From Zygnema circumcarinatum SAG 698-1b (Eukaryota; Plantae; Zygnematophyceae), in the NCBI GenBank assembly GCA_037447605.1, contig CM074816.1, positions 446,869 through 510,868 on the forward strand: a DNA stretch of 64,000 nucleotides. Reading direction: 5' to 3'. Below the pieces are notes generated by a model. The model searched no databases, was not told the DNA's origin, and worked only from the letters and a program-made list of their open reading frames with translations. The translations under genes and the position numbers were made by a program. Shown here in pieces: positions 16,486-29,593 of this stretch (positions are counted from its first letter, which is position 1; every line of letters begins with the position of its first letter).

Positions 16486-19400
16486 ATGGCCATGGCGGGG
16501 CAGGGACGGATGCCGTGGCTGGCGGGCCTTGTGCTGGTGGCGCTTCTGGGAGCCATGGCGCCTGCGCAGGTACAAGTGCAGGCGCGGGGCGCGCAGAAGG
16601 AGCAGTGGGAGGTGCACACGATCCGGTACACGGGCATCATCATCCCCGGCTTCGCCTCGTCTCGCCTGCGCGCATGGGCCATGCTCGACTGCCCCTACAC
16701 GCCGCTCGACTTCAACCCACTGGACCCCGTCTGGCTCGATACCAAGAAGGTGCGTGCGCGGAGACATACGCTCGCAGCCATGGCTGCTTTCCCTCCAGGA
16801 GCGTTCAGGACGCTGAGATTTTAGGCTTTGCGCGGATCCCTGAACAGGTGATGGCTGCTACTTCGTGCTGGCTCAAGTGCGTGATGCTCGATCCCGTGAA
16901 CCAGACGGATCATCCCGAGTGCAAGACGCGGGTGGATACAGGGCTCAATGCCATCACGGAGCTTGATCCGGGGTATATCACAGGTGAGATTTTGCATGCG
17001 GTGTTAGTTTCGGTTTGGTTCAGACACTCAGGCTGACAGTGAAGCTGCGTTCGGTTCGCTGTCGCTGAAGTCCTTAACAGCCTTTAGCTAGGAGATTCTT
17101 TCCCTGGAGAATAGCAGCAATTTTGCAATACGTCTGCTTCTCTACAGTTGGTGGTGCTTTCACGCATACTTCCAACTAAAGACTTCCTCCTAAAAAAAAG
17201 GGTTTGTTTTGAAAACAGCTGACGTTGACACGTAGTGTCCAGAGAGACAGGTTATCTTGTGAAAGAACTACAGTGGCTTGGATTCCGTTCTTAAAAAAGG
17301 CAACCTGAAGAGGTGGTTTCTGGAGGAACTAATTGACTGGCTAATTACCTTGAAAACCTTGTATTGAAAAAAATAAACTGGGAGATAGTTCATAAAAGGA
17401 GGATTCTGGGGCTGTAGCGTTCAAGGAAATTAAATTTGAGACTTTCCTGACAAAAGGGCTGGTTTTGTGGGAATTTCCTAAAGAACTTATACAACCGTTT
17501 AACCCACACTATTTGCGCCATACATTAATCAGTGTAGGTACATATTTTTAGTGCGGTCCACAATTGGTCGAGGCAAACTGGGGAAAAGCCGAGTTCGCAA
17601 TCCGCGAAGTCCATACTAAATACGATGCTCGGCTATTTGTTTACCCCAGTAGAACAATTTCTTTCAGGTTTTCCTATTCTGTAGAACAGCTTACGTGCAG
17701 AGGAGGTTGCTGTTTTGCTCCAACACGCCTACAAGTTTGGTGCTTACCCAAAAGCTGAATTTTATTAGATTATGTCGTCATTCAAGTTATCTTGTATCCT
17801 GCAAGGGCACACAGCTTCCAGATTCTTTCACTCCTTTCATGGCTGCCAGTGTTTTATTTAAAAAAAACCAAGCATTCCATTGCGTTTTGTACAAAATGCA
17901 GAGCATTTTAAGTTAATATATCACTAGGACCTGCTTCAAGACTGTCTGTGAACTCTTTGCTCGCATTCCAGAAGCAGAAGAGTGTTGATTTTAAGCTGCT
18001 TAGTCTTGTTAGTCTTTTTGCAACTTACAAATTGGCCAAGGCCACTTAAATGGGAGAATTGGACCACTTTTTTGCGATACACGAGATTTATTACTCTTCA
18101 CAGTTTTAAAAAGTATGTATGTCATTGTTGTTGAATAGGGCCTTTGTCATCCGTTTGGCGGTCGTGGGTGAATTGGTGTGTGGAGTTTGGATTGGATGCG
18201 GATGCGCTTGTGGCGGTCCCCTATGATTGGCGGCTCTATCCGCACATGTTGGAGGATCGGGACCTCTACTTTCACAAACTCAAGTACGCCCTCTTTCAAT
18301 TGGTTTCAAAAATTTCTAAGCACTTGGAATGAGGAGGAATAGGTTGCCGTTTTTGACAGGAACTAGAGGATCGTGTAAAATGAAGCGTAGTAATCTATCT
18401 TCAAAAGGCTTACTTACTCCCTTTACATCTCTTGCCTTCGTGCATCCGTAACCGATGTCCTTTGCAGTGATTTATCAAGACTTCACCTTCGGATCAACGA
18501 TGTGAATTTAACTGCTTTTTTGGGTTAGTGAAAAGTCGAACTAGGTGGATGGTGCAGGATCACCTTCGAAGCTGCAAAAAAGCTGCGTGGAGTGCCATCA
18601 ATTGCGTTTGCGCACTCCATGGGGAACAATGTTTTTCGATATTTTCTGGAATGGCTACGCCATGAATTAGCTCCGCGCCATTATCAAACGTGGATTGATG
18701 ACCACATTATTGCATTTCATGCAATTGGTACATTCCCTCATTTTCCTGTGTGGTTTTTCTATGCAATCGATGTTCTTGCCCCCCCATTTGACATAAACTC
18801 AAAACATATCATTGGCTAAAATTGGAAATAAAGACCAATAATTACTATCCTCGCGTAGCACATGGCAGCTGCCCCTCTCCTTGGTGCGCCTGAAGCCATA
18901 AAGGGCTTCTTCAGCGGCCTCACCTTTGGACTTCCTATTTCTGAGGTGTGCTCCCTACACTTTCTGCCATGGCAAAACAGCTATTTATTCCTCTCTCATC
19001 AGCTGAATGGTGAAAGGGGAAGACTAAAGGGCAGGGGGGGGGGGCGCGGCACACACACAGAGAGAGAGAGAGAGAGAGAGAGAGAGAGAGAGAGAGAGAG
19101 AGAGAGAGAGAGAGAGAGAGAGAGAGAGAGAGAGAGAGAGAGAGAGAGATTGAGAGGGACGGTCACTTATGTGGCCTTCATGCAGGCCACGGCACGTGTA
19201 ATGGGGAACTCATTTGGAGCGTCTATGTGGATGTACCCGTTCTCTCCACACTGCGGATCACCCTCCCAACTCTGCCGGAGGAAGCCAGATGGAAAGTCAC
19301 ATACAGCTCCGATGACTTGCAGCGCACACGAAAAAGCAAAGAACGCATCCGGATGGCCCGTCCATATTCTCACCCTCGACATGGTGCCAATCCCTTTGCC

Positions 19401-28279: not shown

Positions 28280-29593
28280 ATGCTCACTCTCGGCCTCGCC
28301 ATTGCTCCCGGCTGCGCCCTGTCAGCGCTGCTGGCCTTCGTTGCCTCCGCCTACCTCTTCTTTGCGGTCAGGGCACTCCCTCCCGGATGGCTTCGCCTCG
28401 CAGCTTCTCTTCCCGTGCTCGCTCTCTACGTGGCAGCTCCGCGCTTCGTCGATCCGAGTCATGACACTATGGCTACTGGCGTGCTGTTCTGCGTGCTGAC
28501 ATGGCTCGCCTCCTTCCGCGTGCTTTCCTTCTGCTGGGCGGAGGGCATACTGATGGAGCCCTTCGCAAACCGCGATGTGCTGCGCTTTCACGCATGCCTC
28601 GCTATTCCCATACATCTCCGCCCCGCGGGCTGGCAGCCACGCAGGGTGAGAAGGAGAAAGGACGGTGCAGATAATGGGAAGGGTGTGCTCCAATGGCTGG
28701 TTGGAATAGCGGATTCTGACACGTGGCCCGTTCTGGTTGCTCGGAGCGGCTTAAAGTTTCTGGTTATGGTCCTTCTCTTCCCACTCTACGACTTAAAAGA
28801 GAGCTTCCCCTACCTCACGCTGCAGGCTCTTCATGCGATCAATTTATTCCTCTTCGTTACTTTGGTACTTGAGGCTTTAGCAGCTGTCATGCAGCTTCTG
28901 CTGGGAATGCCGGTGGAGCCGCACTTCGACCAGCCGTACTTGGCCTCCTCTCTGGAAGACTTCTGGTCGCGTCGCTGGAATCTTCTCATCAGCGGACTGC
29001 TCAGGGATACCATCTACCATCCTCTCCTCCGCCTCCTAACCAGTCAGAATGCCATTTCTACTACAGAAACCTCTGTACAAGCTGATACTGGAAAATTCCC
29101 TCCAAACGCCCTTGAAAACTCTAGAAATCCTGATCCCACAATAGGGAAGCAAAGGGGAGAAGAATGTCCGCCTATACAGAGAGGAGTTCAGGGAAGCCTT
29201 CGACACCGAGGTACTCCCTCTCAGAGTGCCGCGTTTGACCCACCTGCCAGTAAAGTGACAGCAAGAGCTGCGCCACTTTGGGCACGTCTTGTAGCCATGC
29301 TCGCAAGTTTTTTTGTTTCCGGCATCATGCATGAGCTTGCTGTGTTTTATCTTTCCGGGAAAGTGACGGGTGAGATGACTGCGTTTTTCACTTTACATGG
29401 CATTGCCACTGCCTTGGAGGCGGTAGTGAAGTCGCTTATGAAAGGGAAGGCCGGCCTTCCGCGAGTGCTCGCCATCCCATTCACAGTGGGCTTCACCTTT
29501 TTGACAGCTCAGAGGCTATTTTTTGGGCCTCTTGTGTCACTTGGAGTGGACCAAAATACAGTGAAAAATGTCCGGAGACTCCTTGGGATTTAA
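28280..29593 (+). CDS. MBOAT wax synthase / ASAT1-like acyltransferase (copy 3, 437 aa, intronless)
   Basis: Same motifs (PHFDQPYLASSLEDFWSRRWN, FFVSGIMHEL); paralog of copies 1 and 2. Confidence 0.93.
   Translation: MLTLGLAIAPGCALSALLAFVASAYLFFAVRALPPGWLRLAASLPVLALYVAAPRFVDPSHDTMATGVLFCVLTWLASFRVLSFCWAEGILMEPFANRDVLRFHACLAIPIHLRPAGWQPRRVRRRKDGADNGKGVLQWLVGIADSDTWPVLVARSGLKFLVMVLLFPLYDLKESFPYLTLQALHAINLFLFVTLVLEALAAVMQLLLGMPVEPHFDQPYLASSLEDFWSRRWNLLISGLLRDTIYHPLLRLLTSQNAISTTETSVQADTGKFPPNALENSRNPDPTIGKQRGEECPPIQRGVQGSLRHRGTPSQSAAFDPPASKVTARAAPLWARLVAMLASFFVSGIMHELAVFYLSGKVTGEMTAFFTLHGIATALEAVVKSLMKGKAGLPRVLAIPFTVGFTFLTAQRLFFGPLVSLGVDQNTVKNVRRLLGI

Follow-up and report, generated by a model that had tools for sequence, protein, structure and literature searches.

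A 64-kb stretch of nuclear DNA from a green-lineage alga, Zygnema circumcarinatum SAG 698-1b (64,000 nucleotides of contig CM074816.1, assembly GCA_037447605.1; called the window in the following), carries four consecutive acyltransferase genes on its plus strand at positions 16486-29593, one gene of the LCAT family followed by three genes of the membrane-bound O-acyltransferase family MBOAT_2 (MBOAT1, MBOAT2 and MBOAT3). We consider it likely that this row represents a conserved ortholog of the plant phospholipid:sterol acyltransferase (PSAT) beside a lineage-specific tandem triplication of MBOAT_2 genes, and that the adjacency of both is coincidental and not the sign of a selected, co-regulated cluster. 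The MBOAT genes would then have come to lie beside PSAT by chance, in a genome densely packed with genes; genes in the window are spaced by approximately 5 kb and their introns are short. A sequence-only reading of this DNA had described four acyltransferase genes in a row on one strand with nothing between them, and had proposed a metabolic gene cluster for sterol or wax esters. The description is confirmed by the gene models, the Pfam matches and the scans of the spacers, as neither open reading frames (ORFs) nor Pfam nor Rfam point to a further gene between the four, and an Rfam search of 15000-31000 returned zero matches.

To identify the first gene, the protein was searched exon by exon, and the joined coding sequence was computed only for frame continuity and length. 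Five exon ORFs match PF02450 (LCAT), and their matches are colinear with the profile; four exceed the cut-off of 21 bits and one stays below it (16.5 bits). In a comparison of a 56-residue exon (18559-18726) with a set of 1.84 billion representative proteins, a 642-residue Panicum protein named phospholipid--sterol O-acyltransferase ranks first among the full-length matches. For a tblastn comparison with the region we took, from 273 collected proteins, all those with 450 or more residues, a set that holds no bona fide plant PDAT1. Named PSATs from Riccia, Marchantia, Sphagnum, gymnosperms and angiosperms, together with two unnamed transcript-derived proteins, reach summed scores of approximately 760-840 bits at 46-53% identity, and the other LCAT-family proteins (PDAT-like, LCAT-like) at most 350 bits. 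The coverage is colinear over residues 43-642 of the Panicum PSAT.

The Ser-Asp-His triad, which the sequence-only reading had attributed to this gene, is found in the alignments. All three residues fall on invariant positions of plant PSATs. The Ser lies in AHSMG in exon 4, opposite the AHSMG of human LPLA2 in which Ser165 is the nucleophile. The Asp is part of SGDVT, with which exon 10 ends, and matches SGDGT of the Panicum PSAT, itself aligned with DGDGT of LPLA2. The His belongs to DHR, with which exon 13 begins, and every sampled PSAT has His in this column. With plant PSAT1 the predicted protein thus shares end-to-end colinearity at 48-53% identity to the land-plant enzymes, a similar length (655 residues compared to about 630-660), the AHSMG Ser, the SGD Asp, the (D/N)HR His and a VPYxSLSWCKxWLG block. 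It differs from the land-plant enzyme in being encoded by an algal gene with 14 short introns, in its poorly conserved E6-E7 region (about residues 265-395, 24-32% identity in tblastn), and in that its activity on sterols is a predicted one. On these comparisons the first gene is best assigned as a single conserved ortholog of plant PSAT, within the PSAT clade of the LCAT family. By homology it would encode an enzyme with LCAT fold that uses the triad to transfer an acyl chain from a phospholipid to the hydroxyl group of a sterol.

The model of the PSAT-like gene (Table 1) has canonical splice sites throughout and a frame open over 655 codons, as derived from RNA joints, phases and a script. 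Spliced contigs with GT..AG joints occur in four public runs from three studies, and because these contigs are spliced the four runs represent RNA. A run of N at 20817-20826 lies inside intron 11 (GT at 20700, AG at 20890-20891) in CT-rich low-complexity DNA. In a 2383-nt spliced contig of run X1 (record 1) the window positions 19829-19928 correspond to contig positions 1216-1315, and 20891-21076 to 1539-1724. The intervening 223 nt are exactly exons 9, 10 and 11 (99+52+72), and from this arithmetic it follows that exon 11 is joined directly to exon 12 in the mRNA, in frame. In tblastn, exons before and after the gap match plant PSATs in colinear order as far as the C-termini. The gap is harmless to the gene. 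That a gap or misjoin has produced a false neighbourhood or a chimeric PSAT might be suspected from the low complexity of the DNA around the N run and from a repeat between PSAT and MBOAT1, but we regard this as very improbable: the exact exon arithmetic and the colinear exons speak against it, as does the continuity of the assembly between the PSAT-like gene and the MBOATs, which contains no gap. There, contigs of the PSAT 3' untranslated region (UTR) reach 22830-22861 and contigs of MBOAT1 start at about 23195.

Two candidates around the gap were ruled out. A 178-residue ORF at 20550-21086, in frame through the gap, is not a single exon, as the RNA joints divide it into a part of intron 10, exon 11, intron 11 and exon 12. 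The sequence DGEQ just 5' of exon 11 is not the catalytic Asp motif, as it is intronic; the last 78 nt of intron 10, which have no DNA similarity to exon 10, are open in the frame of exon 11 and encode this look-alike (…FDGEQ). Unspliced contigs leading through intron 10 (20306-20627) from exon 10 to exon 11 (20278-20656) occur in three runs at approximately one tenth of the spliced word depth, which indicates intron retention or pre-mRNA. We further report two simple repeats at this gene that make long spurious ORFs, a (CATA)n/(CATC)n microsatellite immediately 5' of the PSAT start (16032-16202) and, in intron 5, a perfect (AG)45 tract (19059-19149).

Each of the three MBOAT genes is a single ORF and matches PF13813 (MBOAT_2) with 50.8-54.2 bits, compared to a cut-off of 25; pairwise identity among them is 66-69%. 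The FW-x-RRWN-L motif and SGIMHE are kept in all three, and with them the Asn and the His that had been noted for each copy; in MBOAT1 the residues Asn241 (RRWN) and His360 (SGIMHE) are invariant in 10 aligned sequences. The RRWNL motif is typical of the plant/algal wax-synthase (WS) clade (PMC8802113). An AlphaFold2 model of MBOAT1 has moderate confidence (predicted local distance difference test, pLDDT, 67; predicted template modelling score, pTM, 0.65). In a Foldseek search of the PDB with this model the top 21 matches are all MBOATs (template modelling scores of about 0.32-0.47), among them DltB, plant and human DGAT1, ACAT1/2, HHAT and PORCN. An exact-sequence look-up of MBOAT1 returned no record.

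Between the Asn and the His motif the proteins contain a hydrophilic loop that is predicted to be disordered (MBOAT1 residues ~264-338, about 75 residues), encoded at 24350-24580, 26630-26860 and 29050-29270. A loop of 75-100 residues occurs in all three MBOATs and in the four algal homologs closest to them, and is lacking in the sampled land-plant wax-synthase-type proteins. In MBOAT1 it is not an intron, because RNA contigs cover it unspliced. The algal proteins therefore resemble wax-synthase-type MBOATs such as jojoba WS, Arabidopsis ASAT1, EaDAcT, HpWS and CzWS1 in the MBOAT_2 family, RRWNL, the His of SGxMHE and a multi-helix fold, and differ from those of land plants by the loop, by an identity of only ~29-36% and by their position outside the sampled ASAT/WS clade (see below). 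Profile and motifs place the three genes in the plant/algal wax-synthase/ASAT type of MBOAT_2, as the sequence-only reading had it. By homology, their products would be multi-pass membrane enzymes of the wax-synthase/ASAT/DAcT family that use acyl-CoA to esterify a lipid alcohol. The acceptors of the relatives are diverse. Jojoba WS uses fatty alcohols and AtASAT1 uses sterols. Euonymus EaDAcT of the same family acetylates diacylglycerol (DAG) with acetyl-CoA (PMC5100001); Haematococcus HpWS, acting on fatty alcohols and DAG, makes wax esters and triacylglycerol (TAG) in yeast H1246 (PMC8802113), and Chromochloris CzWS1 is cited in the same paper for fatty alcohols and DAG. Which of fatty alcohol, DAG or sterol is accepted by the three algal MBOATs is beyond what their sequence can tell.

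In a maximum-likelihood tree of 16 MBOAT sequences the three copies cluster together with a support of 91/96, and one algal protein is their sister (96/97). All algal sequences stand outside a clade (100/99) that unites ASAT-named Salix proteins with grass WS-like proteins, and because of this position a sterol substrate is not inferable for the MBOATs. A grouping with the ASAT1-type rather than the WS-type was not obtained in this small sample, from which AtASAT1 is absent, and on sequence grounds the three cannot be labelled ASAT1-like over WS-like. The earlier label "WS/ASAT1-like" hence holds for the WS/ASAT-type family and not for a placement in the ASAT1 (sterol) subclade.

Between the copies the synonymous divergence (dS) is 0.55-0.68 with a ratio of nonsynonymous to synonymous divergence (dN/dS) of about 0.4, and the nucleotide similarity ends at the borders of the coding regions. 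Taken together with the grouping in the tree, this is an argument that the MBOATs arose by an old tandem triplication specific to the lineage and are under purifying selection. A comparable arrangement is the tandem array of WS-like MBOATs on Arabidopsis chromosome 5. Both would go back to local tandem duplication within the same family, the algal one having arisen independently within its own lineage.

To assess the neighbourhood in other genomes we used five PSAT loci and 83 MBOAT_2 loci, all from outside the genus and the family of the alga. Relatives were collected by word searches, of which the one with MBOAT1 itself gave 10 and the one with an algal profile 9, together 12 distinct proteins. 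PSAT-MBOAT_2 adjacency occurs at none of the five PSAT loci (one other alga, Marchantia, Sphagnum, angiosperm) and at none of the 83 MBOAT_2 loci, so that the microsynteny sought in relatives is absent as far as the available data go. In the alga of SRR33208241 PSAT and MBOAT are on separate contigs with other genes adjoining, the MBOAT gene lying behind an ArsA/GET3 gene. In Marchantia paleacea an S1-P1 nuclease and AIR9 lie downstream of PSAT, in Sphagnum compactum an AMP-binding enzyme lies upstream and a P450 downstream, and near neither PSAT gene is there an MBOAT_2 gene. The Sphagnum neighbours are at L009:1-4356 and L009:21713-26479, and the AMP-binding enzyme is of the acyl-activating type. 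On the angiosperm contig no MBOAT_2 gene was found within 4.6 kb downstream of PSAT.

Seen from the MBOAT side, the nearest relative (P0001, 47% identity) is on contigs of less than 2 kb and thus uninformative on synteny. No LCAT-like sequence was found at the three loci with the closest available MBOAT_2 homologs, two of which adjoin a GH38 mannosidase gene and one lies behind an ArsA/GET3 gene. An LCAT-family match is likewise missing from all 80 metagenome loci that carry MBOAT_2 relatives; 23 of these loci are at least 8 kb long. MBOAT_2 is reported absent from three unicellular Zygnematophyceae (PMC11096116), and one of these, Mesotaenium, has a PSAT (P0036). As a separate observation, the MBOAT_2 homolog stands head-to-head with a GH38 alpha-mannosidase gene at both L001:3692-9489 and L003:1549-9271. 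These come from unrelated samples (one Logan assembly and one JGI metagenome), and the MBOAT_2-GH38 neighbourhood is conserved in another algal lineage.

The proposed metabolic cluster has to be seen against this result. PSAT and an ASAT would catalyze the same reaction with differing acyl donors, and their steps are parallel, not sequential. Because they would be alternative routes to the same product, the usual rationale for a metabolic cluster does not apply. Only two enzyme families are present, less than the three non-homologous enzyme types or the consecutive steps by which we would recognize a cluster. With the avenacin, thalianol and momilactone clusters the algal row shares adjacent genes of non-homologous enzymes in the same orientation. 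It is unlike them in having two enzyme families that would represent alternative routes to one product class and not consecutive steps, and in an arrangement that is kept in no comparator. The cluster proposed by the sequence-only reading is therefore not upheld: the adjacency is absent in all comparators, the MBOATs cannot be assigned to ASAT1, the PSAT and ASAT steps are parallel, the flanking genes are not related to lipids, and the RNA contigs give no sign of a tight co-expression of PSAT and MBOAT1.

One could still think of a true functional module, in which PSAT and the MBOATs are co-regulated and make steryl esters, or steryl and wax esters, for lipid droplets or the lipids of resting cells, the linkage of both acyl-donor routes having been selected. 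The adjacency on one strand with short spacers would fit, and LCAT-type and MBOAT-type enzymes are the two known types of sterol acyltransferases in Arabidopsis (PMC5952233). PSAT and MBOAT1 are moreover entirely transcribed in the runs X2, X3 and X6. In addition to the lack of adjacency elsewhere and the two families with parallel reactions, it speaks against the module that the MBOATs do not group with the ASAT-named proteins and that the characterized algal relative is a WS/DGAT. Run X1 contains PSAT in fully assembled form and almost nothing of MBOAT1, and the upstream regions of PSAT and the MBOATs share no motif except a low-complexity 8-mer, the only word common to all four regions in a shared-k-mer search. 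We regard such a module as unlikely.

The transcripts give a further hint in the same matter. PSAT mRNA was assembled to full length in X1 and into long spliced contigs in each of the three remaining runs. For MBOAT1, three runs belonging to two studies contain fragmentary contigs, unspliced at 23195-23817, 23862-24191 and 24310-25000. This is a hint that PSAT and MBOAT1 are unequally expressed. MBOAT2 and MBOAT3 would be transcribed as well, judging from sampled-word shares of 0.46-0.77 for 19601-29600.

A sharper version of the favored explanation, that of a conserved PSAT beside an unrelated MBOAT_2 triplication, commits to a fatty alcohol or DAG as the acceptor. The MBOAT array would be a self-standing expansion of wax-ester/TAG synthases for stress lipid droplets or surface lipids, with G-box promoters of its own, and PSAT would be irrelevant to it. 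HpWS and CzWS1 provide precedents for MBOAT-type WS/DGAT enzymes in algae (PMC8802113), the three proteins carry the RRWNL motif known from the plant/algal WS clade, and each MBOAT start codon is preceded, at a distance of 184-587 nt, by one CACGTGGC G-box, with none upstream of PSAT. The likeness to HpWS and CzWS1, on the other hand, comes from family and motif and not from a direct sequence comparison, and the G-box is non-specific. Shuffled sequences would lead one to expect 1.3 copies of this G-box/ABRE-like (abscisic acid-responsive element) octamer in the 64 kb; there are 17, and they often stand directly before a gene. The octamer probably serves as a general promoter element in this genome, and because it is enriched across the whole window, the G-boxes of the MBOATs are a weak hint. 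We find this sharper version plausible, if somewhat short of probable.

While we favor the coincidental adjacency of PSAT and the MBOAT_2 triplication, one must keep in mind several points that weigh against it. The chance adjacency of exactly this pair is rare a priori, as a single PSAT gene has two neighbours out of thousands of genes. All four genes are on one strand, and the untranscribed interval between the PSAT 3' UTR and the MBOAT1 transcript is only ~330 nt. The comparators include no genome of the same genus or family, and a recent selection for linkage, restricted to this lineage, may have taken place. The tree of 16 sequences was calculated without the biochemically characterized AtASAT1, jojoba WS, CzWS1 and HpWS, and expression was seen as assembled contigs, which give neither levels nor correlation.

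The positions of the features are collected in Table 1. The neighbours of the four-gene row, both on the opposite strand, are a gene for a PWWP-domain protein on its upstream side and one for a protein kinase on its downstream side. The repeat between the PSAT 3' UTR and the MBOAT1 promoter has GC-rich, partly inverted ends (GGGGCACG.../...CGTGCCCC, poly-G/C tracts). RNA contigs of many other loci pile up on it with a word depth of up to ~1000 and loose ends at 22832-22834, 23009 and 23197, and it looks like a transposon of the MITE type (miniature inverted-repeat transposable element) that is transcribed elsewhere. Long ORFs on both strands of the MBOAT2-MBOAT3 spacer were rejected as genes, since they are GGA/GGAGGGA low complexity and the one that was scanned has no Pfam match. 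Long ORFs antisense to the MBOAT genes were also rejected.

Table 1. Features of the acyltransferase row and its surroundings, given as positions in the window.
Feature	Position	Strand	Basis or remark
PSAT-like (LCAT family) gene, 15 exons, 655 codons	16486..21952	+	Pfam LCAT, RNA joints, tblastn
PSAT-like exons 1-5	16486-16749, 16848-16983, 18139-18283, 18558-18727, 18869-18945	+	
PSAT-like exons 6-10	19186-19402, 19520-19694, 19831-19930, 20010-20107, 20254-20305	+	
PSAT-like exons 11-15	20628-20699, 20892-21078, 21321-21425, 21680-21764, 21868-21952	+	stop codon starts at 21950
PSAT-like intron 11, GT..AG, CT-rich low complexity, holds the N gap	20700..20891	+	positions of X1 record 1
PSAT-like 3' UTR	21953..22861	+	RNA contig ends at 22334, 22409, 22830 or 22861, depending on the run
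Repeat element between PSAT 3' UTR and MBOAT1 promoter	22830..23230		RNA contig pile-up, sequence
MBOAT1, intronless MBOAT_2 gene, 446 residues	23563..24903	+	Pfam, motifs, AlphaFold2 model, RNA contigs
MBOAT2, intronless MBOAT_2 paralog, 447 residues	25840..27183	+	Pfam, alignment, tree
GGA/GGAGGGA microsatellite, MBOAT2-MBOAT3 spacer	27853..28096		spurious long ORFs on both strands
MBOAT3, intronless MBOAT_2 paralog, 437 residues	28280..29593	+	Pfam, alignment, tree
CACGTGGC sites, examples of 17	23379, 25483, 27693, 39109, 48953, 59960		

In its most far-reaching form the idea of a functional linkage would mean that this lineage of conjugating algae has joined phospholipid-dependent and acyl-CoA-dependent sterol acyltransferases into one co-regulated module for the storage of steryl esters or neutral lipids, for example under stress or during the formation of resting cells. 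We hold this to be a rather improbable speculation. If true, the co-regulated module would be the first case of lipid-storage genes clustered in a streptophyte alga. A functional linkage would suggest that the algal relatives of land plants had organized their steryl-ester homeostasis as one genomic module, and it would help to approach the substrates of algal MBOAT_2 enzymes. For the present, the locus provides a clean, RNA-supported gene model of an algal PSAT ortholog, and three intact MBOAT_2 paralogs of the algal type which, with their distinctive disordered loop, are reasonable candidates for a substrate screen.

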